A stretch of DNA of 64,000 bases from Phaeosaccion multiseriatum (Eukaryota > Protista > Ochrophyta, other classes): NCBI GenBank assembly GCA_965112735.1, contig OZ218963.1, positions 1,612,001 through 1,676,000 on the forward strand. Reading direction: 5' to 3'. This document shows, one piece after another, positions 27,353-62,624 of this stretch; within the stretch, counting starts at the first letter, position 1; the number at the start of each line of letters is the position of its first letter. The notes under the pieces were generated by a model. That model searched no databases. It was not told the DNA's origin and saw only the letters and a list, made by a program, of their open reading frames with translations. The translations under genes were made by a program, and so were the position numbers.

Positions 27353-30300
27353 TCAAGCTGTGCGGCGGGCAGCGGCCCTTGCGAGGTTATCTCTCTCTGC
27401 CACGAACATGAGATTCTTCTCCTTCATCGCTTCGATCTTGGCCTTCAATGCCTTAATGTCGGCTCTTCTCTGGTCGTAGTCCACGATGAGCAGGTCGCTA
27501 TTGGCAAAGCCCTGACTCTGCCGGAGTGAGGCAGCATCCGCTCTGAGCGCGTCTCTCTCTCGCTTGGCGCGTGTCATCTTATCACGCTCCTGAATCACCT
27601 CTGCATCTCTCTCTGCCATCCGCTGTCGAGCGATTTCATTCTCATTCGCCACGAATTGGAGCTTCTCCTTAATGTGCGTGAGCATTTGCACAGTGGTGGT
27701 GTTCTTCCTCCTCAGCTTGTGCAGCTCCTCATTCCTCTCTTCAATCTTTTCATTGAGCGTCTGATTCTCGATTTTGAGCTGCTCAAAGTCAATCAAGTGG
27801 AGGCCCTCAGCAAGCTGCTCCTTGGATCGCAGCTGTGTTTCCAGCTTCTTGAGCGTCATGCGCAAATTGATATTCTTGAGGCGCACTTTCTCAATCTCCG
27901 CGTCCTTCTTGCCCTGGAGGGCCTCAAACTGCATGATGACCCGCTTGGGGATGGCCTTGCCCGTGCGACTGTTCTCAGCGGTGCGGGCAATCTCTCGTTT
28001 GAAGTCACGGAAGGAATCTGAAATCTCCCTCGCTTTGAACTCCTTCTCGTCAAGTCTGGCCTGTAGATCTATGGCGTTCTTATCGTAGTCATCCTCCTGA
28101 CTGCGGAAACGCTCCCTCGTATCCAGGATGGCTGTAAGTGTCTCCGAATACTGGCGAGGGAGAATGGGAGGGAGGGAGGGAGGAAGGGAGGGAGGGATGG
28201 AGGGAGGGAGGGAGGGAGGGAGGGAGGGAGGGAGGGAGGGAGGGAGGGAGGGAGGGAGGGAGGGAGGGAGGGAGGGAGGGAGGGAGGGAGGGAGGGAGGG
28301 AGGGAGGGAGGGAGGGAGGGAGGGAGGGAGGGAGGGAGGGAGGGAGGGAGGGAGGGAGGGAGGGAGGGAGGGAGGGAGGGAGGGAGGGAGGGAGGAAAGG
28401 AGGGCGGGAGGAAGGGAGGGCAGGAGGAAGGGAGGGAGGGAGGCAGGAAGGACGGAGGGAGGGAGGCAGGAAGGACGGAGGGAAGGAGGGAGAGAATGAG
28501 AAGGAAGGCCGGCAAGTCAGCATATGTGGACGTACAATGTCAAGTAAAGACCCTTCCTTCTGTTGTACGGGAAAGTGAATGGCCCAACTCACCTGCTTCT
28601 CGCTCTCCCGCACCGGGGGTGCATCTCGGTCCGCTTGCGCTCTGCCGTCGCCTCGATTGTCCTCTCGCTTCTTCTGCTGTAGTGCCATGAGCTGCGAAAT
28701 TTGCTTCTGCCAGTCCATATTTTCCTTCAGCAGCCTTTCCTTCTCCTCATGCGCACTGGCCAGTCGCTCCCGCAGGGCATTGGTGGCGTCTTTGCGCTCT
28801 CTGATGATGTCCTCTCGGTCACGCTGAGATGCCTTGAAGGCTTCTTCCTGCTGCCGCCTGTCTTCCCAGACTTGGGTTTGCTCCGCGGACATTGTGCGGT
28901 CCACCTCGTACTCCTTGCTCGCCCTCCTTCCGCTCTTGCCATTTCTTCCCACCCCTCCGGCGGTGTTGGTGCTGCTGCCAACGCCATTGGTCAGGCCTAA
29001 CTCATCTTCCACTTCCTTGCCTGTCTGCTGAGCCGTCCTCTCCGCCACGCCAGCAATGACACCTTCCACCGCGCTGGCCCACTTGATGCACAGAAAGAGC
29101 TCGGCAAAGTAGGCCTGATTCATCTCTTCGGGCATGGGGAAGGTCTCAAAGCCTGAGCCCATCTGGAAGCCCCGCTGTCCATAGACAAGGGCAAGGTCCA
29201 CGACAGGGACCACGCCTTCTCCTAGAGCCTCTTTTCGCACGCACAAGAGTACCTTCTTGCCCCCCTTCGCCGCTCCTTCTTCTGCCGCCGGAGCCGCCCC
29301 TTCTTTCTCTTCTTCTCCTTCTCCTCCCCCTCCTCCTCCTCCTCCTCCTCCTCCTCCTCCTCCTCCTCCTCCTCCTCCTCCTCCTCCTCCTCCTCCTCCT
29401 CCTCCTCCTCCTCCTCCTCCTCCTCCTCCTACTTCCTCTGTCGGTGTTGGCTCGGCGGCCCCAATATCAAAGACAGTGACGTCGTAGCCATCCGGTACCG
29501 TCTCGCCTTGACCGAGGACTTTAATGTCTGTAACCGCCACACGTGCTGCCATGCCGCTCTGCGTCCCCTCTGCCGCAACATCACTGTCAGTAGCAGGCTC
29601 CTCGGGCGGCGGGGAGAGAGCCGCATCCTCGCTACTTGTCTTTACTCTCGTGAACTGCAAGCCCAGGTTGATGAGCGTCATGGCCTCCGCTCTCTCCGGG
29701 GGCATGAACATGTTGCTCTCATGCTCGTCGTCGAGCAAGGCAATCCCGCCCGTGTTCTGAGTCAACTCGACGGAGGCGATGGGCCCCACATCGCTGCGAA
29801 GTGCATTGATGGCGGCCATATGATGTGCTGTTTGCTCTTCCACCGTTCCTTCTCCTCTGTTATTGCCCAACCTGCCGAAACTGCCGCCGTCTTCTTCGGC
29901 AAGACTGGTGCCCTCTGCGTGAAGAGCCGCGTCCCCGCCCAGACTGTTTCCTCGATTGTGCACCTGCACGACGAGCCCCAACGCGCAAATATCGTCCATG
30001 CCGGGCAAGGTGATGCCCTCCTCCGGTGGCTCAATGTACGGTATAGAGCTGGGGTCTTCTCGCACATAGACTTTGATGTAGTAAGTACCCCTCGCTGCCA
30101 TGTCCCCGCTGTTGATCCGAAGGTCAAAGGAGCCATCCTCATGAATCTCAAAGGCCCACGGCCCCACAACCGCGATAACGTCGCCCGTCCCGTCCACATA
30201 GGGCTGTCCGCGGCTGTGGAACTGCTGCTGCAGCTCCTGGGAAGAGAGAACGTGAGACGGGGGCTCGTGCTGAACGACGCAACCACAAGGCCCGTACGTC

Positions 30301-37461: not shown

Positions 37462-39139
37462 ATGTCTCAAGGTGATTATCGAGTGGCCGACATCTCCCTT
37501 GCGGACTTCGGCCGCAGGGAGTGTGACATTGCCGAGCATGAGGTGAGGTACACAAAGGCAGGGAACAGAAAAATCCTTGGGTGGATCTTACGACGCAGAG
37601 CCGTTCAGATGCTGCTGCTGCCCCGCCCCGCTGTTGTTTGGCTCTGCCATTCTGCTTGCTGTTCCCTGGGAGGCCATATAATCTATTGATGAGCGTGTGT
37701 TGGAATGGGGCAGGGTTGGGGCAACCAACTCACACACGCTCTCCCCTCCTCTTCTTCCCTGCCCCTCCCGCTGCTATCCCCAGATGCCCGGGCTCATGGC
37801 GTGCCGCAAGGAGTACAAGGGTGTGCTTGCCGGCGCCCGTATTGCGGGATCCCTGCACATGACCATCCAGACTGCTGTCCTGATTGAAACGCTCAAGGAG
37901 CTCGGCGGAGACATGCGGTGGTGCTCGTGCAACATCTTCTCCACACAGGACCACGCCGCGGCTGCTATGGCTCGTGACGAGTCCGCCGCTGTGTTTGCGT
38001 GGAAGGGTGAGTCCCTGGAGGAGTACTGGGAGTGTACCCTCTCTGCCATCACATGGCCCACGGATGATGGCAAGGGTGACGGACCGGATCTGATTGTGGA
38101 CGACGGAGGTGACATGACCCTCCTCATTCACGAGGGATTCAAGGCCGAGAACGCCTACGAGAAGGACGGAACCCTTCCCGACCCTTCCAGCACAGACAAC
38201 GCTGAGTTCAAGCTGGTGCTGGAGATTATCAAGCGCGAGCTGCCGAAGAACCCCAAGAAGTGGCACCAGTTGGCCGCCCGATGCAAGGGGGTGTCCGAGG
38301 AGACCACCACTGGTGTGCACAGGCTGTATACCATGGAGAAGGAAGGATCGCTGCTCTTCCCCGCCATCAACGTCAACGACTCCGTGACCAAGTCCAAGTT
38401 CGACAACCTGTACGGCTGCAAGCACTCCCTGCCCGACGGCCTGTGCCGCGCAACCGATGTTATGATTGCAGGAAAGAGCACCGTCATTTGCGGTTACGGT
38501 GACGTCGGAAAGGGTTGCGCCCAGGCCATGAAGGCCGCGGGAGGCATTGTATACGTGACGGAGGTGGACCCCATTTGCGCCCTACAGGCAGCCATGGAGG
38601 GCTTCCGCGTGGTGCGCCTGGAGACGGTGGTGGGAATGGCCGACATTTTCATCACCACCACTGGCAACAAGGACATCATCAAGGCCTCCGACATGGAGAA
38701 GATGAAGAACAACGCCATTGTGGGCAACATTGGCCACTTCGACAACGAGATTGAGATGGAGAAGGTCATGGGTATGACCGAGCGCATCAACATCAAGCCC
38801 CAGGTGGACAAGTTTGTGTTCAAGGACGGACACGGCGTTATTGTGCTTGCGGAGGGCCGTCTGCTCAACTTGGGGTGCGCCACGGGCCACCCTTCCTTCG
38901 TCATGTCAAGCTCCTTCACCAACCAGACGCTCGCGCAGATTGAGCTCTGGAAGGAGAAGGACTCCGGAAAGTACGCCGTCGGAAAGGTGTACGTGCTGCC
39001 CAAGCTGCTGGATGAGAAGGTCGCCCGCCTGCACCTGGACGCCCTCGGAGTGGAGCTCACCGAGCTCTCCACGGACCAGGCAGACTACATTGGTGTCGCA
39101 CAGATTGGGCCCTTCAAGCCCGAGACGTACAGGTACTAG
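37462..39139 (+). CDS. SAHH: S-adenosyl-L-homocysteine hydrolase (form with the ~40-aa insert); exons 37462-37542 and 37784-39139
   Basis: [13 protein letters not shown]...E|[62 protein letters not shown]. Confidence 0.98.
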
Positions 39140-41594
39140 ACAAAGGTACACAATGATGTGTGTGGCAGTTGGCACAACAGAGAAAGATGATGAAACTTCA
39201 TTTTGATTTTTGGGTAGAGAAGGGACGAACAGAGAACCCCACATACTAATAAAGTACGTACGACACAAAATTGATGAGAAAAGTGAAGTCAATTTTCTTT
39301 TTTCATGGCCACAGAGTGAACACGTTCCCTATTCCTCTTCCGGCGAACTGAGCAAGCGCGACTCCTCCTCGTGACCAGTCGGCCCGTATGCGTCCTCATC
39401 AGCGCTGTTGTGACTGATCGTCGTCGGTGTCACTTGAATATAATGTGCTACCGATGATCACCCTGTCTTTTGTAGATCAGGCTGCCTCGGAGAGTGCATT
39501 TGGTACCGAATCTGCTGCTGCACCAGCGCTTCTACAACACTAATTTTAACTGCTGGACTCGTCAGCCTTTAGAAGACCCTGCAAACAAGAAGAGGCGGAG
39601 GGCGTTGGAGCAAGAGAATGTCATCAATCAGGGTTCAGACCCATCAGGAATGATGCGTCCGTGTCGCGGAGGGAGATGAGAAAATGCACACAAATTATAG
39701 CCCTCCGACCACACAGAGGTTACGGCTCTTCCACAGCCCGCTCTTCATGCTGCTGGCCTAACCCCCTGTGCACGGGGTACGGAGTCGCGGACGGAGACTA
39801 GAAATGCACACAAAAGTAAATTGCAAAGAAGGGAACTTCCGACACCACTTCCCCATCGAGCTCTTCGTGTTGCTGGCCTAGATAAGCACGTGTGTTGCTG
39901 GCCTAGATAAGAACGTGTGTTGCCCAAGGAAGAGCCCCATGTGACAACCCCCGCGGGGCCAACGGTCGGACACTGTCGCCACCTCACTCACCAGCGTTTG
40001 AAGCTGCTCATCGTCGAGGGTGGGGTAGATGACCCACGAAGCTGTTTGTGTGAAAGGCAGGAGACACGGCGGCACGAGGAAAAGCAGCTTAGAGGGAACC
40101 ACGTGCTTGGCTCGGGATTAGGGATGCTCAGGACCAAAGCAACACAGGGAACGGAGAAGAGGGGCATGCTATCCCTGCAATCGTAACTTCCGCAACGAAT
40201 ACTGGCAACTATCTGAGCAACTTAAAGATACACCCATGCACGGGGCAAAGGCACATAGAAGCGAAAGCGACCGGGGGGGGGGGGAGCTCCCCGGAGAGAC
40301 ATGAAACACACCTGCGACTCCCACCGGAAGCAGCCACGCCGCGCGTTTTGCCATCTGCATTATTGGGACCTTCGCCTTGGATGCGGCTGCGGCTGCTGCT
40401 GCTGGTGGTGACATGTTTCGCCCTTTCTGTCCTTGATTGCTCTTGTCTTTCTCGGTACGGTGACTCACGGAGGCACTCAGCAAAAATGGAAAACGCCACT
40501 GAAACTCACATTCTACCTAGGAGCAAACCTTGATGAGCTTATACCCGCTCAGGCAAGTGTATCTATTGGAAGGAAGCACCTGTTAAGTGTGGGGTGGACT
40601 TCTACTTTGACGCCACAAGGATGCCGTCGACGGCCATAAATCACACCGTTCGGGAATCGATGTCGCAAGTGATTCGCAATTCGGATGCTGGTCTCGTGCA
40701 GCACCCTCATTTACAGGGCGGGGGCCCTCTGAAAGAGCTTCAACGCATCTCGGTGAGCAATAAATACATCCCTCAGAACATGAATGCAACAAGAGAGTGA
40801 TTGGAATCTCAGCCGAACTTCGATCCGGGCGTACTGTGTACGCGAACAACTTGTTTGGCTGTGACCCGGCGAGTCCTCGGTATCAGAAGCTCTCAGAGGC
40901 ATTTTGGAATCACTACTCGCTCGAGCTGGAAGGGACCAAGCGCCTGGAGTTGTCAATGTGAGCGGTAAAGGTAGCACTGTGCCGGCCACTCGCAGCCGGC
41001 CTTAAGACGGCTGGCATGGAGGAGAGAGACCGCGTCTTTGAGACTCCGCGGCCTGATTTCCGCTTCACCGCCAAGTCTGCACCACGCGACCGGAAGGGGG
41101 CGAAGAGAACTGTCGCATCACCTCACGCAGTTTTGGGGGCTGTGCTGGATGGGGCTTACAGACAACATCGGCAAATACGAAGACCCTCCCCCACGTCGAT
41201 CCTTTGGTATGATGACACTCACCTTCGCGTTTCATTTGATGTTCAGGAGATGTAATGTCGATCCCTGAGACGTTCAGCTTCTTATCATTTCATGTTTCGA
41301 GACGTTAGATACATAACAACGATGAAGACTGATAAATACAGCTGAATGAGAGTGCACAGTTTGCGGCCCAACAAGGCCGATGACTACAATTAATTTAAAA
41401 AAATAAATGAGGAGGCCTCTCGATGGGCACGCGGTTTGGATCGAGCGCCGCAACTGCGCCTTCCCCACTTCGTAAATGATTCGCCAGCAAGTGTGCGGAG
41501 AAGAGACGATGGGAAGAGCCGGGCCATGGAGCACTGACATCACAATGAAACACCAATTCACTCCCTCTTGATAACTCTATCAAGCGTGAGACTG

Positions 41595-43253
41595 TCAAGC
41601 ATTGACTACGACATTGTCCAAGAGGGGGACATCATCATCGGGAGCATTGCTGCTGCTGCTGCTCCTGTCCTTTTCCATTTTCGGGGTGCTGCTACCGCTG
41701 CTATTACCGCTCCTAGTGCTGTGCAGAAGGTACATCTGAACGAGCACCGCAGCTGCCAACAGGGCCGTACAGATGCCAAACACTATGTGCTTCTTGACGC
41801 TCAGCTCCCAGTCGCTGCCGATGGGCCCTGTCAGCATGATGACCACAATCGTATTGAGCAGCACCCGAAACAAGTTCATCACTGTGCCGCGTGCGCTGTC
41901 CTCGATGTATCTGGATCTCATCGTGCCGATAGCCGGAAAGTACACGCCCACGCACCCCTCAAACACGAGCATGACCGCCATTATGAGGGCGGGCGTTTCG
42001 AAGCTGGCAACGAAGTACATGCACACCGTACTAACGAAGCCCACCCATAGCAGCACCTTCTCGGGGCTCATCCTCCACTTGTGGGGTAGTACCTCCGTCA
42101 GGAAGCCAAAGGCCGTGCTGCCGCCCATCACCGCGATCATAAAGCCCGTGAACACGTCGCCGTGATGAATGCTCACGGAGGGAAGTCCTCTGCTTGCGGC
42201 GTCTTGCTCGGCCGCTGCGTCCAGCACGGGCGTCCACATGACGACAAAGGTGAGCATCGCGCTCTCAAAGAAGGACTGGTAGAGACCAACGCACAGAGTC
42301 TTGGGGTTGGAGGCGATCTGCTTGCAGGCGAGACGGGTGTTGGCCAAGGCGTCACGCAGTGCAGTACCGACACCTCCACTGCTGCTGCTGCCTGTCTGTC
42401 GGGTACCGTAGTTCTCCGTCCACATCAGCATGAGCAGCCCTGCTACGACCACGCCCATTGCCGCTGACAAGTCGAATGGGGCCTGGATGCCCCAGCCCTT
42501 GTCCACCCCCATGCCCGATAAATGGCCGGCGCCCACAGCTACCAACCCCATACCCTGCACGTATTGGCTGAAAGTTCTTCCCAGCAGAGCCGAGGGGAAG
42601 CCTCTGCTGTGGTGCTCGTCCACCATCCAGCACTCGTAGGACGTGGCAAAAAGGGCGTACGCCACTCCGGAAATTGCCCGCCCCAGAAACAAAACGCGGT
42701 AGCTCCCTGACCGAAGCATGAGGCACTGCAGAACGTGCAGGAAGCAGGACGCCAGGCAGCCTTTGCGCCGCCCGAACTTGTCCACAGCCGCACCGATGCA
42801 CATGCTGGCCACCCCGGCAGACACGAAGCCGGCGGTGAACAGCAGTCCAATGTCCGTAATCTCAAAACCCTTCACTGAGTATAGCTCATAGAGGTACGGC
42901 CCCATCATGAAGTCTGCGAGCGTCGCTAACAGATGCACGAGAAGGTAGACATTGCGAAAGCGCAAGAAGGCCTTTGGAGCGGCAGAGACGGCATCAACCG
43001 CACTGCTGCTGCCGACGGTGTCCGACTTCGATAGTGGGGAGTGTCCCAGGCCCACGAACAGACTGGAGCCGAAGTAAATCGAGGCCGTGAGGATAGCCGT
43101 CACAAAGACGGACAGCTCCACAGCTCCAAGCTCACCTCCTTCTCCATCGCCCTTAAAAGTCGAGAACGTGAACACCGCAGTGACTGCCGTCCAACCCCCC
43201 AGGCTACGTAACACTGACCGCCTGCTGCCCCCCTCTCCTTCGGCCTGCGACAT
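41595..43253 (-). CDS. MFS transporter of the MFSD5/MOT2 (molybdate-anion transporter) family
   Basis: FRNVYLLVHLLATLADFMMGPYLYELY, DKFGRRKGC, GRAISGVA...SYECWMVDEH, FEGCVGVYFPAIGTMRSRYI...RGTVMNLFRV. The start (MSQAEG) is uncertain; the ORF is open to 43559. Confidence 0.9.
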   Translation of the reverse strand: MSQAEGEGGSRRSVLRSLGGWTAVTAVFTFSTFKGDGEGGELGAVELSVFVTAILTASIYFGSSLFVGLGHSPLSKSDTVGSSSAVDAVSAAPKAFLRFRNVYLLVHLLATLADFMMGPYLYELYSVKGFEITDIGLLFTAGFVSAGVASMCIGAAVDKFGRRKGCLASCFLHVLQCLMLRSGSYRVLFLGRAISGVAYALFATSYECWMVDEHHSRGFPSALLGRTFSQYVQGMGLVAVGAGHLSGMGVDKGWGIQAPFDLSAAMGVVVAGLLMLMWTENYGTRQTGSSSSGGVGTALRDALANTRLACKQIASNPKTLCVGLYQSFFESAMLTFVVMWTPVLDAAAEQDAASRGLPSVSIHHGDVFTGFMIAVMGGSTAFGFLTEVLPHKWRMSPEKVLLWVGFVSTVCMYFVASFETPALIMAVMLVFEGCVGVYFPAIGTMRSRYIEDSARGTVMNLFRVLLNTIVVIMLTGPIGSDWELSVKKHIVFGICTALLAAAVLVQMYLLHSTRSGNSSGSSTPKMEKDRSSSSSNAPDDDVPLLDNVVVNA

Positions 43254-43752
43254 CTCCTCCGACTTGTGCTGTGGTGGCGAGCAAGGAGGGAGGATTTGGA
43301 GGGGTATGGAGGGGCATGCAGAGGGGCGAGGATTGATTAGTGCTCTGGGCGTTATTTTAGGGAGAACCATCCTCCAAAAAAGCCGGAGAAGATACCGCAT
43401 ATGCATATAAGATACCGCAAATATACCAGACCGAGAAGCACAGATCCTAGCACAAGTCTCTTCCACACCTGTTATTCTTGCCTCACTGTCTTGGCCCTGC
43501 CGGTTCCGAGCACAGCAGAAAAAGAGAAAAACAGGCAAAATTTCAGCACGTCCTGACACTTGTACAAAACGGGAGGTGGAGAAGATTAAAAATCGAGTTC
43601 CCGTTTTCGGCTCCAGACTGGCCTAGTAGAAGCCTAAGCTCTAGGCCCTAGGCCGAGCGGCCTACGCCCGCTCTAGGCCGGCCGTTTTTTCTCCCTAGGC
43701 CGGCGGTTCTAGGCCTAGGCCTCGACGATCGACGACGACCTAGCTAGCTAGT

Positions 43753-43913
43753 CAGCGGGGCGGGCCGGGGCAGCAGCAGCATCTGAACGGCTCTGCGTCG
43801 TAAGATCCACCCAAGGATTTTTCTGTTCCCTGCCTTTGTGTACCTCACCTCATGCTCGGCAATGTCACACTCCCTGCGGCCGAAGTCCGCAAGGGAGATG
43901 TCGGCCACTCGAT
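43753..43913 (-). pseudogene. Captured SAHH fragment (part of exon 1, 5' splice site and part of intron 1)
   Basis: 43766-43913 is the exact reverse complement of 37478-37625 (148 bp); similarity extends to 43753 with a 5-nt insertion. Confidence 0.95.
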
Positions 43914-44560
43914 GACGACCTATCTGTCGGCCCCAGCCATCCACGCCTAGCGGTTTTGCTCTAGGCCGCTAAGCCGCTCGGCCTTCGGCCAATCTAGGCC
44001 TAGGCCGGCGGCCTCCGGCCGCTCTAGGCCGCTCACTTCTCAGTCCTAGGCGGCCTATATAGCCCGCCTCTAGGCAGCCTCCCAGTGACCGTGGGCGCGT
44101 GCGTGGTGCCGAACAGCCAGTGGGTAGCAGCACATCTGTAGGTCTGCACTCCTCGTAGGGCCAGCGAGGCGGAAGAGACAACACGAACCAAGCCTACTCC
44201 ACTTCCAATCCCATGCGACTACTCTTTGCACTCTGGGCACTCCCATTCACCCACTAAGTTGGCTGGTGTCTGCCCTAGGCCGCGCGGGCCTCCGGCCCGC
44301 CTAGGCCGCCTAGGCGGCGGCATATAAATACGCCGAGGGCCTACGGCCCTCGCTAGGCCGGGCAATTTTCCCAAATAGGCCTAGGCCGCTAGGCCGCTAG
44401 GCGTGCATGGGGCTGATATCTGATCAGTAATTACGGCCGGCGCAGGCGGCCTGATTACTGATTATGACCGGCGCCAGCCGGTCTGAGTACTGATTATGCG
44501 CCAGCCGGGGGCTGATTACTGATTACGGCCGGCGCACACCGTAATCTTGTCCAGGGTCGA

Positions 44561-44866
44561 AGGGAGGGAGGGAGGGAGGGAGGGAGGGAGGGAGGGAGGG
44601 AGGGAGGGAGGGAAGGAGGGCGGGAGGGAGGGAGGGAGGGAGGGAGGGAGGGAGGGAGGGAGGGAGGGAGGGAGGGAGGGAGGGAGGGAGGGAGGGAGGG
44701 AGGGAGGGAGGGAGGGAGGGAGGGAGGGAGGGAGGGAGGGAGGGAGGGAGGGAGGGAGGGAGGGAGGGAGGGAGGGAGGGAGGGAGGGAGGGAGGGAGGG
44801 AGGGAGGGAGGGAGGGAGGGAGGGAGGGAGGGAGGGAGGGAGGGAGGGAGGGAGGGAGGGAGGGAG
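44561..44866. repeat. (GGGA)n tract (~306 bp) bracketed by two MITE TIRs
   Basis: Starts immediately after atcttgtccagggtcga (44544-44560) and ends immediately before tcgaccctggacaagat (44867-44883). Confidence 0.95.
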
Positions 44867-45020
44867 TCGACCCTGGACAAGATCATCTGATTCTGATTAC
44901 GACCGGCGCCAGCCGGTCTGGTTGCTTACAGCCGGTGACCAGCCGGCCTGATTACTGATTTTGGCCGGGGGCTGATTACTGGTTGCGGCCGGCGCACACC
45001 GTAATCTTGTCCAGGGTCGA
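44867..45020. mobile_element. MITE nested in the Pack element (a 5'-degenerate sister copy lies at ~44403-44560)
   Basis: 17-bp TIR tcgaccctggacaagat / atcttgtccagggtcga; internal ctgattactgatt and gccggcgccagccgg motifs shared with 49778-50071; no TSD visible. Confidence 0.85.
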
Positions 45021-45158
45021 TAGGCCTAGGCCGCTGCCGGGGGGGCTGCGCCAAAAATAGGCCTAGGCCGGGGACCTGCGGCCCCCTCTAGGCCGGCCGA
45101 ATTTCGTCTCTAGGCCTAGCTGGGCTTCTGGCTAGGCCAGTCTGGAGCCGACCGTTTG

Positions 45159-45318
45159 TCAACCCCTGATACACTATCCGCTATCGCTGGCGCCAGCTAT
45201 CCGCTGTCGCCGGCGCCAGCCGGCACGCTATCCGCTATCGGCCGGCGCCAGCCAGCCGGCGCGCTATGCCCCCCGGGGCCCGATAGCGCGCTGAGGAGGT
45301 GCATGCATCAGGGGTTGA
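45159..45318. mobile_element. MITE, gctatc-repeat subfamily
   Basis: 12-bp TIR tcaacccctgat / atcaggggttga; internal gccggcgccagcc and gctatccgctatcg repeats; no TSD seen. Confidence 0.7.
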
Positions 45319-45714
45319 GTACCCAACCGAAAGGGTTGCCCGCGGAATTTTTTTGGCCGCTGCTAAACCGTAGAAGGCGAAAGAACCGTAGAAAGGCCTC
45401 TGAGTGGGCTGAGAGAGGACCTTAGGTCGTGTGCAGTGTGCAGTGTGAGCAGAGAAGAAAGAAATTTTTTACTGAAAAAAGGGGGGGGGGAGAATTTATG
45501 AAGAGGGGCTCAGCAGCTACAGGGCCAAACCAAAACAATGCATTTGGTCGCGTTCACTATTATCGTCGCCATGCAGCTACTGGTACATGCATGAGCCGGT
45601 CTGCTCTCGTGATATCACCCCGCGCCCCCCAAACCATGAGTAACACTATTATGCCAACGATGAAACCGTCATTCCCCCCCCCCCACACAGGAGGAAGACT
45701 GGTATAGTATGGGG

Positions 45715-45870
45715 ACAGTATTAGGGGTCCAACGTTTCGGTAGCACCAATCCTCCGGTATGAAGGTGTAGGACTCACCGAGCGCACCTTTTGTTACGATA
45801 AAGGCATCCCAATATGCCTTCATTTTTTTTTTCAGACTGAAGGCATAATGGGATGCCTTATATCGTAACA
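45715..45870. mobile_element. Truncated, diverged, inverted copy of the 46385-46609 element
   Basis: Aligns to the reverse complement of ~46385-46552, retains the internal hairpin (45791-45870) and ends in tatcgtaaca. Confidence 0.8.
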
Positions 45871-46384
45871 GAGTTGCAACGCCATGTACCGTGGTATACT
45901 TGTTCAAGACGAGAGGATGTTGTACGACGGGATCTCCACTTTGGATATCTCAGTTCTCCCCAATGTTATCCACCTACCGGCCGCGACATTTCAGAGCAGG
46001 AGAAAAAGGGGGGGGAATGGTGGAAGCAGCGGCCTGCGTGCTGAAGGAGGTGGCAGAAGTACATGCATCCCAAGATGGGATGGCACAGAGCCCGGGAAGG
46101 TGGACTTGTGTGTGGACACTGATTTGGATCTGTGTAAGCTCCCAAGTTTTGTATGGCTTCAAAGTCATTCGATTAACCATGTGGACAGCTTCACCGCGCA
46201 GCTTTTTTCATGTGTCTGGGACGGGGTGCTGCAGGACAATAAAGGTAAGTATGTCCTTGCTGTTCCCGTCGTTGCCTGACTGATGCCCTTAGGGTTTGAT
46301 CCCACCAGAGTCATGACGCTCTTCTGTGATGCTGACGATGCTCCGCTCGTTCCCTCTTATCCTGCAGGATGTTGAGGGGGTTGT

Positions 46385-46609
46385 TGTTACGATATAAGAC
46401 ATCTCAATATGCCTTCAGTATTATCCGAACGTTTGGATAATACTGAAGGCATATTGGGATGCCTTATATCGTAACAAAAGGTGGGTTCCTTGAGCCCTAC
46501 ACCTTCGCACCGGGGGGTTGGCGCTACCGACACGTTCGTCCCTAAATACTGTATTTTCCAAACGTTCGGATAATACTGAAGGCATATTGAGATGTCTTAT
46601 ATCGTAACA
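46385..46609. mobile_element. 225-bp MITE with TGT...ACA ends, 53-bp perfect TIR and 5-bp TSD (Ginger-like termini)
   Basis: TIR 46385-46437 versus 46557-46609; TSD gttgt at 46380-46384 and 46610-46614; a third internal TIR-like copy forms a 92-bp hairpin at 46385-46476. Confidence 0.88.
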
Positions 46610-48102
46610 GTTGTACCAGCGCATGACCGTGATACCACCCCACCACGAGTTTTGCCAAGTCTTCGCCTTGATTCGGTCGGTCCCGACAGGGTAGCAGCAG
46701 CAGCCACAGGTCCACAGGAGCTGAAGCAAGTCTTAGACGGGGATCAAGGCGAGAAGAGTCTTCTCTAAGCCGCCTCGCGCTTGGCGTGGTAAGAAGAAAG
46801 GTATTTTTGCTGTCTCGCGCGCCGCAATGTATCATCGCATTCTCGATTTAGAGGAAGGAGGGGGGGGGCTCTGGGTGGGCTCCAGGACCGAAGGCATGGC
46901 GGGCTGATAGAGAGACCTCCAAGGGACCAAGATGACGGGCTTGAGTGTGCATGGGCGGGTCAGAGAGCAGAAGGGAAAAGCTAAGGGGGAAGTTAAGGAG
47001 ACCACCTTCTCCGCGGGTCGAAGATGATTTGGGCGCTTTGCTGTGGGCTGTTTGGACCTAATTTGGACGAATGTAAGCATAGTAGAGGACTACACACACT
47101 CATACTGCAAGAGGGACACTTATTGGGGGTGTACAGGGCCGTCTACGGTTTATTTTTGCCCCGACGGTTTCTGCCGCCCGCCCGCGGCAGATTTTTCCAA
47201 ATGTGCGACGCTTTCCGAATAATGTTATCGGTGTGGCCTCGTGGACCGGAAGGCCTCCTGCCATGCCGCGAACGCTACAAAAGGAGTTTCCTTGGATCAA
47301 GATTTCCCTCTTGCAGAGCTCCACGGTGCCGTATCCTCATATCCATGCCTCGCTGGAAATTCTCCCTCGACTCAGGCAGATTTGTCGTCCATAATGCAGA
47401 CAAAGAAGGGGGCAAGCGGCAATTCAAGTGGACCAGGACATCCATAGGGACAAAGCAAGGAAGCGGAGACAGCCTCCTGGTGCTCCTGTCTCACTTATCT
47501 GTGCTGTCGCGCCCTGTCGCCAGGCTTGATTCAGTCTACCCCCCCCAAAAGGCGTCGCAAGGCAGGGGAGAGGCGGCTCCATGTTAGCCTCAGGGCCAAG
47601 GGCAGTGACGACCCTTCCCGGAACAGCTCTCAGTAGCCTCCTAGAGGCCTACCGCTCACTCCAAGTTCGATGAGATGTGCGTACGGGCTGATTAAGTGGA
47701 GTGGTGTATTTAATAGACGTTACTAATGTGATCGATGATGTCCTGTCCTTACGCTTACCCCGATGTCCTTTATTCCCTTGTCCTGATACTCCTTTCCCTA
47801 CTACACGGCCTTGTCACTTCCCTTTGCCGCCTACACGGCCTCATCCCTTTGCCCCCCCGACACGGCTTCGTCACTGAACCGCCCCTCCCACTGTCCCGAA
47901 TTTGACCGAAATAGACCTCCTCGATATCCCCTGTCGATGTCCTGCCCATACACTTACATGAGCAGCCGCCTCGACGAAACACTCGAAAAGGACGCTGGAA
48001 GCAGACGCACGGAAACTGCCTGCCACCCACACCCCTCCCCCCCCCCTCCCCACACACACACGCACACACACACACATATACATATATACTCGTTGCTATT
48101 AT

Positions 48103-49777: not shown

Positions 49778-50071
49778 TCGGCCCTGGAAGAGGTTATCAG
49801 ATTACTGATTACGGCCGGCGCAGCCGGCCTGATTACTGATTACTGCCGGCGCCAGCCGGCCTGATTACTGATTATGGCGCCAGCCGGGCCTGATTACTGA
49901 TTATGGCCGGCGCCAGCCGGGTCTGATTACTGATTACTGATTATGACCGGCGCCAGCCGGCCTGATTACTGATTATGACGGGCGCTAGCCGGCCTGATTA
50001 CTTATTATTGGCGCCAGCCGGCCTGATTACTGATTATGACCGGCGCACACTGTAACCTCTTCCAGGGCCGA
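49778..50071. mobile_element. 294-bp MITE with 19-bp TIR and 6-bp TSD
   Basis: TIR tcggccctggaagaggtta / taacctcttccagggccga; TSD gcacgc at 49772-49777 and 50072-50077; internal ~30-bp tandem units ctgattactgattatgaccggcgccagccggc. Confidence 0.92.
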
Positions 50072-50081
50072 GCACGCATTT

Positions 50082-50180
50082 TCGGCTCTTCCATCTTTTT
50101 GCTTTTTGCTTCTGGCCGGCGCCAGCCGGCCTTCTTCCTGCTTCTGGGCTGGCCTGTCTCAGAAGCATGTCAGGGGCCGA
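50082..50180. mobile_element. 99-bp MITE with imperfect TIR and 6-bp TSD
   Basis: Ends tcggctcttccat / atgtcaggggccga; TSD gcattt at 50076-50081 and 50181-50186; core ggccggcgccagccgg. Confidence 0.75.
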
Positions 50181-50304: not shown

Positions 50305-53300
50305 TCACATCTCAGCAAAGTCTATAATATCCGACGGCGTGGTGCAGTCCTCCCATTCCACACGAATGTCCCGCGGTGTTCCTTCATACGGCTGCGGAAT
50401 CTGCACCTGCAGCGTGCCCAGGCCACTCGTCTCATCCACCGAGTAAGAGTGCTTAACGTCCTTCCCGTCCAAGCTCACGTGGTGAGGAGTGTGCGAGCAG
50501 TAGGCCAGAAAGCGGCCACTGCCCTTCACCTTGACGCTAACCTGCGCTGTCCCACCTTCCGCAGTTGCTTTGAGCTGCTCGCTGACCACGGCACCGCCCG
50601 CATTGAACATGTCCGCGAGACCCACGCTGGCCCATTTCACCTGCCCTACTCTATTCACCTCGGACATGGCAGCCAGCTCGTACCGGTGAGTCCCCAGGCT
50701 GATTGGTAGAGCGTCGTCAAGACCTCCCAACGACAGCGTCTTCTGCTCAAAGAGGTACGTGACGAATTGGCGCGTCCTGCTGCTGCTGCTGCTGCTGCTG
50801 CTACTGCCCTCACGCTCCTTCACAAGAACATGGCAGTCTCGGGGACAGACGGTGCCCTTCTCTTCGTCCTTGGCGTCAAGGGAATCCTTGTCGTACGTGA
50901 GCTTGTTCACAAATGCGTACTTCCGCAGTCTCTGATTCCAGGCACTGCCCGCGATGTTGAACATTCCTACAACGCCGTGCCCTGCAGCCGGATTCTCCGT
51001 CCAAATAGACAGCAGGCCGCCCCCGGGCTGCTGCGGGTCGGAAAACAGACTCTTGAGTGTCGGGAGGGCATTCTGCAGTGGCCTGAGCACGCTCCCATCG
51101 TCCAGCACAATCCTTTTCAGCAGCTCCACATCATGCTCGCCGGGTCTGTCGCTGATGTAGACAGGGCCGCCACTGATGGCTCGACTCGCGGCATGCATCC
51201 AGCTCACGGTCCCAAGCGTGGTTTGGAACATGTCCTGTGGTACAGAATAATAGTTGCATAGGTTGCGTACGAGGCGGGTGGGAAAGAAAAGGAGCCTTAG
51301 CTTCGTATAGTTGGGTTCGGTTGGGGTGAGAAAGGAGGAAAGCCCCCAAATGCCCCCTGAAAAAGGAACCGGCCAGCGTAATAAATATACCTATTTGATT
51401 GAGCAAGAGAGCAAGACGGACGGCGCAATCAATGTCCCCAACACACAACCCCTTTCACTCACCCAATCCTGCAGGCCGCAGTTGCTGATGAGAAGCGAGT
51501 TGAAGGCGTTGGCGTATATGTGCACGCCGTGTGAAGCCGCGTCACGGGGGTAGAAGTCATCGCTTCCGCGCACGACGGGCCGACGCTCGTAGCACGAGGG
51601 CAGCTGAGGGCCGGACGGAAGGGGCCGTGACATTCATAGCGCAGAAAGGAACGAGCACGCACAGGACGGGTGGGGGGTAAGGATGAGGAGGAGGAGGAGG
51701 AGGAGGAGGAGGAGGAGGAGAATGAGGAGGAGGAGGAGGAGGAGGAGGAGGAGAATGAGGAGGAGGAGGAGGAGGAGGAGGAGGAGGAGGAGGAGGAGGA
51801 GGAGGAGGAGGAGGAGGAGGAGGAGGAGGAGGAGGAGGAGGAGGAGGAGGAGGAGGAGAATGAGGAGGAGGAGGAGGAGGAGGAGGAGGAGGAGGAGGAG
51901 GAGGAGGAGAAGGAGGAGGAGGAGGAGGAGGAGGAGGAGGAGGAGGAGGAGGAGGAGGAGGAGGAGGAGGAGGAGGAGGAGGAGGAGGAGAGTGAAGAAT
52001 ACAAGGTGCGAGCTTCAAGGCAAGTTTCCTTTCTTTTTTCGTACCTGTAGAAGAATCTCGTTGTCGTGATTCATGCAGTGAATAATTCTAATATAAAGGA
52101 CATAAAAGAACAGAGGGATGAGTAATGAATTGGATGCTGCCGTTCACCCGCCGACCTCTCCTCACCTGCCTCCAGCACCCAAGGGCCCGTCTGTGTCGCG
52201 AAAGTGCTTCTTCACACTCCTGCTCAGGGCATTGTGCACTGACCGCGTGAGACTCACGCTACCACCCTGCCCGTTGCCAACAAAGTTCAGCACGCTCTGA
52301 GCGGAGAAAAGAAGCACGGCGAGAGGGGCAAACAAACAAACAAACAAACAAACAAACAAACAAACAAACAGCGGTTAGAAACACACCTGTCCTGTCACCG
52401 CACCACAGCAAGCAAAACCCTACCCTAGCTACAGGAGGGTGGTGGATACACACCGTCTGCCTGTGTGTATGTGCGTCAGCCTGCCCGATGGGTGCGTGCC
52501 TATATACCTGCGCATCGACCTTGACCCCATCCACGCCTTGCTCGGCCAGGTACTGGTGGTAGTCATCGTAAAAGGCCCGAATGTGCTTGGCAGGGACCAC
52601 TCCGAAACGCTTGTTCAGAAACCTGCACACGAGGAAGAACATCTTCATCTCTGGGTCCACCTGCACAATGCCGGGAGGGGCCTTGAGGGAAGCTCGGACA
52701 GGCTCATATGCCTCCAGATCCGGGGAATCTAAAGATACGGGGAAAGGGAGAGAGAGAGGGGGGGGGGGGGGGCACAGGGGAGAATGAAACGTAGCTTCGG
52801 ACTCGTTCTTTCCTTCACTCAAACCCTTTCGCCACTTCTTTGAGCCCCTGCCTACGAATATCTCCTTGTGGGCGCGTTGGTTCACCTTGTTAAGCCCCTC
52901 TCCTCATATATAGGAGAAGTGCTCGCCCTTATCAGACCATCAGATACGTCCCCAGACCAACACACCCTCTCCACCCGACACATGGCATGTATGACTTACC
53001 CAGGTCCACTCCAGCCCAGTAGCCTGCGATGGCGTGCCACACGAGGAAGTAGTCGATGTCGTACTCGCCCTTGGCCTACACCATACGACAAGATTCAAGA
53101 TTCAAAAATGAGCGCGCCAGCCACTGAGGCACCGATACTTCAAGTCATCCCACAAACCTCGCCTTGTACAGCAGCGATATGTTTGGGGCCGATAGCACAC
53201 GAGACTATTCTACTCACCTTGCTCACTGTTCTCTTCAAATCGTACCCCTTCTCGTTGTCTCTGAACTTTTCATTCGCTCTGAGTGAGGTGAGGTGGTCCA

Positions 53301-62364: not shown

Positions 62365-62624
62365 TCGACCCCTGAGTTGCTGTTATCTGCTATCTGCGAC
62401 CTGCTATCACCGGCGCCAGCCGGCATGCTATCTGCTATCGCCATCTGCTATCGCCAGCGTCAGCCGACTTTTATCTGCTAGCAATAGCAGACAGCAGCTA
62501 GCTCTCGCCGGCGGTGGCAGCTGACGGTTGGCCGGCTGGTAGCAGGTCAAGGCCGGCGGTAGCAGATATAACACGCCGGCTGGCGCCGGCGTTGGCAGAT
62601 AGCAGATAGCGCGTCAAGGGTCGA
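62365..62624. mobile_element. 260-bp MITE, gctatct-repeat subfamily
   Basis: TIR tcgacccctga / tcaagggtcga (1 mismatch); inverted subterminal tatctgctatctgc / gcagatagcagatag; flanking direct repeat aggt (4 bp). Confidence 0.75.

Follow-up and report, generated by a model that had tools for sequence, protein, structure and literature searches.

A stack of nested 6-bp-TSD MITEs carrying a fragment of a nearby SAHH gene in an ochrophyte alga

Introduction

Pack-MULEs have a TSD of about 9 bp together with long TIRs, and Pack-CACTA elements have CACTA ends and a short TSD. Pack-TIRs that arise by gap filling bear their own marks, namely a bias towards donors in cis, microhomology and single copy (Tan et al., 2021, PMC8277862). 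Nesting of one MITE within another is common in plants and in mosquito (PMC5172404). In the P superfamily the TSD measures 8 bp for P, 7 bp for 1360 and Galileo, and 8-9 bp for BuT5 (PMC3698922).

Here we analysed a 64-kb stretch of an ochrophyte genome (hereafter the window), which is eukaryotic, GC-rich and has many microsatellites. A first-pass annotation had described in it a Pack-type element of a different lineage, in which CTAGGCC blocks alternate with foreign inserts. The locus is a stack of four non-autonomous TIR elements of one group: C1, a GGGA tract and C2 lie in a row inside A, and C1 in turn contains a fragment of an SAHH gene and the element B. We put at about 85% the probability that this is a MITE multimer with one host capture made in place, the product being a single-copy Pack-TIR.

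Results

The outer element was found as annotated. It spans 1545 bp (43607-45151), has TCGG ends and a perfect 20-bp TIR (43607-43626 and 45132-45151), and the 6-bp TSD CCGTTT is present on both sides; with these ends, TIR and TSD it is neither a Pack-MULE nor a Pack-CACTA element. The richness in CTAGGCC was also confirmed, with 20 copies in the element and none elsewhere in the 64-kb window. No Rfam match was obtained inside 43607-45151, and the second of the four CTAGGCC blocks folded better than its shuffles (z -3.8; the other blocks -0.8 to -1.7). The element encodes no transposase, and none was recognised in 39140-48100, where four open reading frames were scanned with Pfam. Exact-pattern scans of JGI metagenomes gave no matches to the TIR of A or to its right arm.

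The window was scanned for pairs of TC..GA ends, and these were tested for exact flanking duplications. Among the 59 pairs with a TIR match of at least 10/14, four had an exact 6-bp TSD (0.04 expected by chance) and none had a TSD of 5, 7, 8 or 9 bp. Exact 6-bp duplications flank 43607-45151 (CCGTTT), 43722-45020 (TAGGCC), 43927-44416 (TATCTG) and 49778-50071 (GCACGC), and a pair with weaker TIRs, 50082-50180, has one as well (GCATTT), making the TSD 6 bp in all five window elements. The group is characterised by TC..GA ends, this TSD and subfamily-specific subterminal motifs of 6-7 bp in direct orientation; the motif of A and B is CTAGGC and that of C is CTGATTA, and within an element most copies point the same way in both arms. 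Clustering of the group was also seen at 49778-50180, where two TCG..CGA elements with the TSDs GCACGC and GCATTT lie 10 bp apart.

TIRs and a TSD, as expected of MITEs, are present in A (20 bp, CCGTTT), in B (degenerate TIRs, TATCTG) and in the free copy of C (19 bp, GCACGC), and the members of the stack are short and non-coding (A 240 bp, B 490 bp, C1 163 bp, C2 154 bp). The read evidence consists of contigs only, and the comparison covered the stretch up to 44550, ending before the GGGA tract, C2 and the right junction. In these contigs the arms and the core of B occur at hundreds of times the single-haplotype depth when contig depths are summed, a high-copy signal rather than an exact count.

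When its middle insert is taken out, A is 240 bp long and consists of the first and fourth blocks. The insert measures 1299 bp, has TAGGCC on either side and is made of two CTGATTA-family MITEs, C1 and C2, with the GGGA tract, which was confirmed, between them. The annotation had misplaced the borders of the modules: the first CTGATTA MITE begins at 43722, not at 44403, and is interrupted twice, by the SAHH piece and by B. The second block, the supposed unique insert and the third block are likewise not separate modules but parts of a single 490-bp element that has a 6-bp TSD of its own. After removal of the SAHH piece and B from 43722-44560, C1 is 163 bp long and can be aligned over its whole length with the 154-bp C2, save for the damaged left TIR; the two are about 82% alike. 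TAGGCC is a weak TSD, as it is also the motif of A itself, and because the left TIR of C1 is damaged, the way in which the dimer of C1 and C2 arrived is inferred. The coordinates are collected in Table 1. Purine microsatellites of similar length (about 300-330 bp) were noted at 28166-28492, 44561-44866 and 51680-51990.

Table 1. Features of the nested stack, the donor gene and a free-standing C-family copy, in window positions.
Feature	Position	Strand	Basis
Donor SAHH gene: exon 1 CDS 37462-37542, intron 37543-37783, exon 2 to 39139	37462-39139	+	Sequence
Left TSD of outer MITE A, CCGTTT	43601-43606		Sequence
MITE A, left arm: 20-bp TIR and CTAGGCC subterminal repeats (first block); the terminal TAGGCC is the left TSD of the middle insert	43607-43721	+	Sequence; depth drop at 43721/43722
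Damaged left end of CTGATTA-family MITE C1, with the left copy of the 9-bp duplication, GACGACCTA, at 43734-43742	43722-43742	+	Sequence
Filler DNA at the capture junction, 10 bp	43743-43752		Sequence
Captured piece of SAHH, comprising 65 bp of exon 1, which begins in codon 6 and lacks the ATG, and 92 bp of intron 1	43753-43913	-	Sequence comparison with donor
Right copy of the 9-bp duplication, GACGACCTA, with the TCGA microhomology just before it	43914-43922	+	Sequence
Left TSD of MITE B, TATCTG	43921-43926		Sequence
MITE B (490 bp), with degenerate TIRs and a high-copy core (about 44081-44261) between the second and third blocks	43927-44416	+	Sequence; read depth
Right TSD of MITE B, TATCTG	44417-44422		Sequence
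Remainder of C1, right TIR intact	44423-44560	+	Alignment
GGGA microsatellite, 306 bp, AGGGAG at each end; adjoins C1 on its left and C2 on its right	44561-44866		Sequence
MITE C2, 154 bp: perfect 17-bp TIR, CTGATTA repeats	44867-45020	+	Sequence
Right TSD of the C1-GGGA-C2 insert, TAGGCC	45021-45026		Sequence
MITE A, right arm (fourth block) and 20-bp TIR	45027-45151	+	Sequence
Right TSD of A, CCGTTT	45152-45157		Sequence
Free-standing C-family MITE, 19-bp TIR, TSD GCACGC; a control on both the 6-bp TSD and the C family	49778-50071	+	Sequence

The SAHH fragment was confirmed, and is an inverted copy of part of the SAHH gene (37478-37634), which lies 6.1 kb away in cis and whose protein is 84-85% identical to the SAHH of Tribonema and brown algae. 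By this identity the host is most likely an ochrophyte stramenopile, and the database contains none of its close relatives. Positions 43766-43913 are the exact reverse complement of donor positions 37478-37625 (148/148), and the copy reaches 43753 past a 5-bp slip near 43765. The presence of intron 1 sequence next to that of exon 1 shows that the template was DNA; a cDNA origin was rejected, as the copy continues across the border between exon 1 and intron 1. A 9-bp direct repeat flanks the capture, the right end of which shows the microhomology TCGA; microhomology of at least 4 bp occurs by chance at about 0.4% (~0.004) of random junctions. This piece is the only host capture in the element. 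Its features are those of single-copy Pack-TIRs: host sequence with an identifiable parent, a single copy with the donor in cis, and microhomology and filler at the breakpoints.

In the summed contigs the SAHH piece is present at 1-3 times the single-haplotype depth, and amplification was seen in none of the runs X2, X4 and X5, so dispersed cargo-bearing copies, as in multicopy Pack-TYPE elements, were not found. A single unitig of run X2 has exactly the extent of the 148 identical SAHH bases and twice the haploid depth, which fits real branching at both SAHH junctions. The label of a Pack-type element of a different lineage is accordingly retained in a broad sense: the element is a non-autonomous TIR element of a 6-bp-TSD lineage with a host-gene fragment taken up at the DNA level, but as the piece appears unamplified, nothing shows that it ever moved as cargo.

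We consider it improbable that SAHH was captured during or just before transposition (by FoSTeST or local hopping) and that the whole 1.5-kb unit then moved to this site. The perfect TIRs and TSD of A indicate that it is young and probably mobile, and a donor only 6.1 kb off is within the range of local hops (PMC8903248). However, SAHH is present in at most three haploid doses, which are explained by two alleles and this copy, and no progenitor lies beside SAHH in the window. Filler and microhomology at the junctions are moreover typical of repair in place, and the multicopy Pack-TIRs in PMC8277862 are far from their donors.

The insert at 44081-44274, annotated as unique, is unique only within the window, where it had no match elsewhere; in the genome it is high-copy by summed contig depth. 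This depth, which is not a copy number, amounts to about 110-550 times (run X4) and 170-1700 times (run X2) the single-haplotype depth for the core of B. Five open frames of the core had no Pfam match. A host or coding origin of the core found no support in the window or in Pfam, and an ancient capture is possible. Since one contig from a differently labelled second organism spans 43992-44288 (block-core-block), this arrangement is an old unit. Other read contigs carry the intact right end of the B family, GGGGCCGA, so that GGGGCTGA, found here, is a private change of this copy.

B has about ten private differences and decayed TIRs, compared with no difference in the 148 bp of SAHH. Judged by this divergence, the SAHH capture would be the younger event and probably the last, though B may derive from a donor that had already diverged. 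Some private changes within 43927-44482 (43991, 44414) fit CpG deamination, a hint of methylation of the repeats.

The first-pass annotation had further proposed that the CTAGGCC blocks mark or receive serial acquisitions of foreign DNA in a repeat-spacer-like layout, a reading that now appears very unlikely. Some features do favour it: stretches of other DNA separate the blocks, CTAGGCC has the same orientation throughout them, one of the inserts did come from the host, the site of the middle insert is TAGGCC, the block motif itself, and one relative has 24 other letters replacing the core of B (joint 44059 to 44283). Yet the blocks are unequal in length (95-135 bp) and only 56-64% identical in global alignment, and are therefore not uniform direct repeats. 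They are the subterminal arms of the nested A and B, each with its own TSD, and the second and third are enclosed by the TIRs and TSD of B itself; A and B are relatives with a common orientation, which gives their four arms the look of repeats. Nor does each pair of repeats hold a unique foreign spacer. Two of the three claimed foreign inserts are transposon DNA (the high-copy core of B, and the two MITEs), and the sole host capture is located inside the left end of C1, with junctions of the repair type, instead of reaching from block to block. The acquisition also duplicated no block. On block divergence, nested TIR/TSD pairs and read depth we rejected the repeat-spacer model; by analogy with P and other TIR elements, the blocks are most likely transposase-binding subterminal arrays.

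Two haplotypes were recognised in the read contigs, each with a depth of about 500-540 (run X4) or about 55 (run X2). The A arm is found at about 380-660 times the single-haplotype depth (summed contig depth, not copy number), and in run X4 the summed depth drops from about 380 to about 7 times at 43721/43722, matching the predicted border between A and C1. A joint from 43726 to 44417, at single-haplotype depth, represents a relative in which an A-type arm runs into the start of C with neither the SAHH piece nor B. The left junction between flank and TIR is bridged by an exact 552-bp read contig at single-haplotype depth, and exact contigs across it occur in two runs, both from one sample. The flank of the CCGTTT site is absent from the other haplotype and from sample S2, which diverges near 43260 and has gaps over the flank; an empty site was seen in neither. 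The segment 43340-43606, upstream of the MFS gene, was seen to be haplotype-specific, as the other haplotype leaves the window at 43339 for about 2.5 kb of unlike sequence.

A chimera assembled from collapsed repeats is extremely improbable: parts of the element are very repetitive, none of the contigs listed for the stretch up to 44550 spans it and the other haplotype differs, but exact contigs from two runs cross the left junction, the limits of the unitig are those of SAHH identity, and mis-joins would not result in three nested TSD pairs.

The stack is found about 350 bp upstream of a minus-strand gene for an MFS_5 transporter. As the SAHH splice donor is on the strand of this gene, the stack might have a local regulatory effect. 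Within the MFS coding region a 15-bp stretch (43059-43073) matches the left end of A in reverse (14/15), probably by chance. One base past the right TSD of A begins a 160-bp element (45159-45318) with a 12-bp TIR (TCAACCCCTGAT) and GCTATC motifs, for which no TSD was found; it is related to 62365-62624, itself with only a 4-bp flanking match. At 45715-46609, inverted arms (45715-45870 and about 46385-46552) are 79% alike, are built of TGT..ACA hairpins and enclose about 500 bp in which a GT-AG intron seems to lie near 46246-46368; no Pfam match was obtained. Within the same region, 46385-46609 contains a 53-bp inverted repeat and has a 5-bp flanking duplication, GTTGT. This is possibly another fragment-carrying element, of a different family.

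Discussion

We propose the following order of events for the MITE multimer with one capture in place. The 240-bp A would have inserted first, at CCGTTT. TAGGCC within A may then have received a C-family dimer: two C copies from a single GGGA tract may have moved together by composite transposition, or gap repair may have copied through a C copy sitting in a GGGA tract. B would have come third, entering C1 near its left end at TATCTG. The final event would have been a break or a stalled fork in this end of C1, within a few bases of the left TSD of B. Its repair by template switching would have added the 10-bp filler, then a 161-bp copy of SAHH sequence from the gene 6.1 kb off in cis, and a return at the upstream TCGA microhomology would have left 9 bp duplicated. 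The SAHH-bearing product could move by the intact TIRs of A; nothing shows that it has.

A doubtful but wider idea is that an undescribed P-like lineage with a 6-bp TSD has a transposase that favours insertion into the subterminal motifs of its own MITEs, TAGGCC being both the motif of A and a TSD. Stacks would then grow, and their crowded ends would break often and pick up neighbouring genes; the 180-bp core of B would be an older capture that was later amplified. If true, a stramenopile would have a gene-capture platform that targets itself.

The locus is not a new acquisition system. Stacking and templated capture are known phenomena, and it is the mobilising transposon family that may be undescribed. 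Nothing relevant was found in the literature on a 6-bp-TSD P-like group or on Pack elements in stramenopiles, which is weak evidence of absence. The stack provides a clean and very young example of gap-filling gene capture together with MITE nesting in an ochrophyte alga, and the window adds five further 6-bp-TSD insertions for this TC..GA transposon group.

In its subterminal motifs, which most likely bind transposase, and in interiors unrelated to a master element, the group resembles the MITEs of the P superfamily (P element, 1360/Hoppel, Galileo and the MITE BuT5; PMC3698922). The TSDs of that superfamily are 7-9 bp, whereas all five window elements have 6 bp and none 7-9. By TSD length the locus is not a classical member of P, MULE or CACTA, and the element is non-coding.

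With the Pack-TYPE elements of plants (Pack-MULE, Pack-CACTA, Pack-hAT, Pack-PIF and Pack-Mariner; PMC8903248, PMC6379663) the locus shares a non-autonomous TIR element with gene pieces. Neighbouring insertions can move jointly with the DNA between them (PMC8903248), and C1-GGGA-C2 may have done so. The TSDs given in these two papers (hAT 8 bp, Mariner TA, PIF TTA/TAA) differ from the 6-bp TSD and TCG ends found here, and the cargo-bearing form shows no amplification.

The head-to-tail C1 and C2, with a TSD-length AGGGAG at both inner ends, are reminiscent of the tandem TE dimers formed by double insertion (McGurk and Barbash, 10.1101/158386). In those dimers, however, the junction is a single TSD, whereas here it is a 306-bp microsatellite, and C1 and C2 are only about 82% alike. 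As in the MITE multimers of rice, maize and mosquito (Jiang and Wessler, 2001, reviewed in PMC5172404), members of the same or related families are nested, each with its own TSD. Stowaway and Tourist have TA or TAA/TTA targets (PMC5172404), in contrast to the TC..GA ends, 6-bp TSDs and three levels of nesting of this stack.

The single-copy Pack-TIRs of Tan et al. (2021, PMC8277862) were described in animals, not in an ochrophyte, and here the recipient is a nested stack in which the capture duplicated 9 bp rather than deleting element sequence. Like them, the locus has a host fragment within a TIR element, present in single copy and near its donor in cis, with microhomology or short insertions at the breakpoints and an intron-containing copy made at the DNA level.
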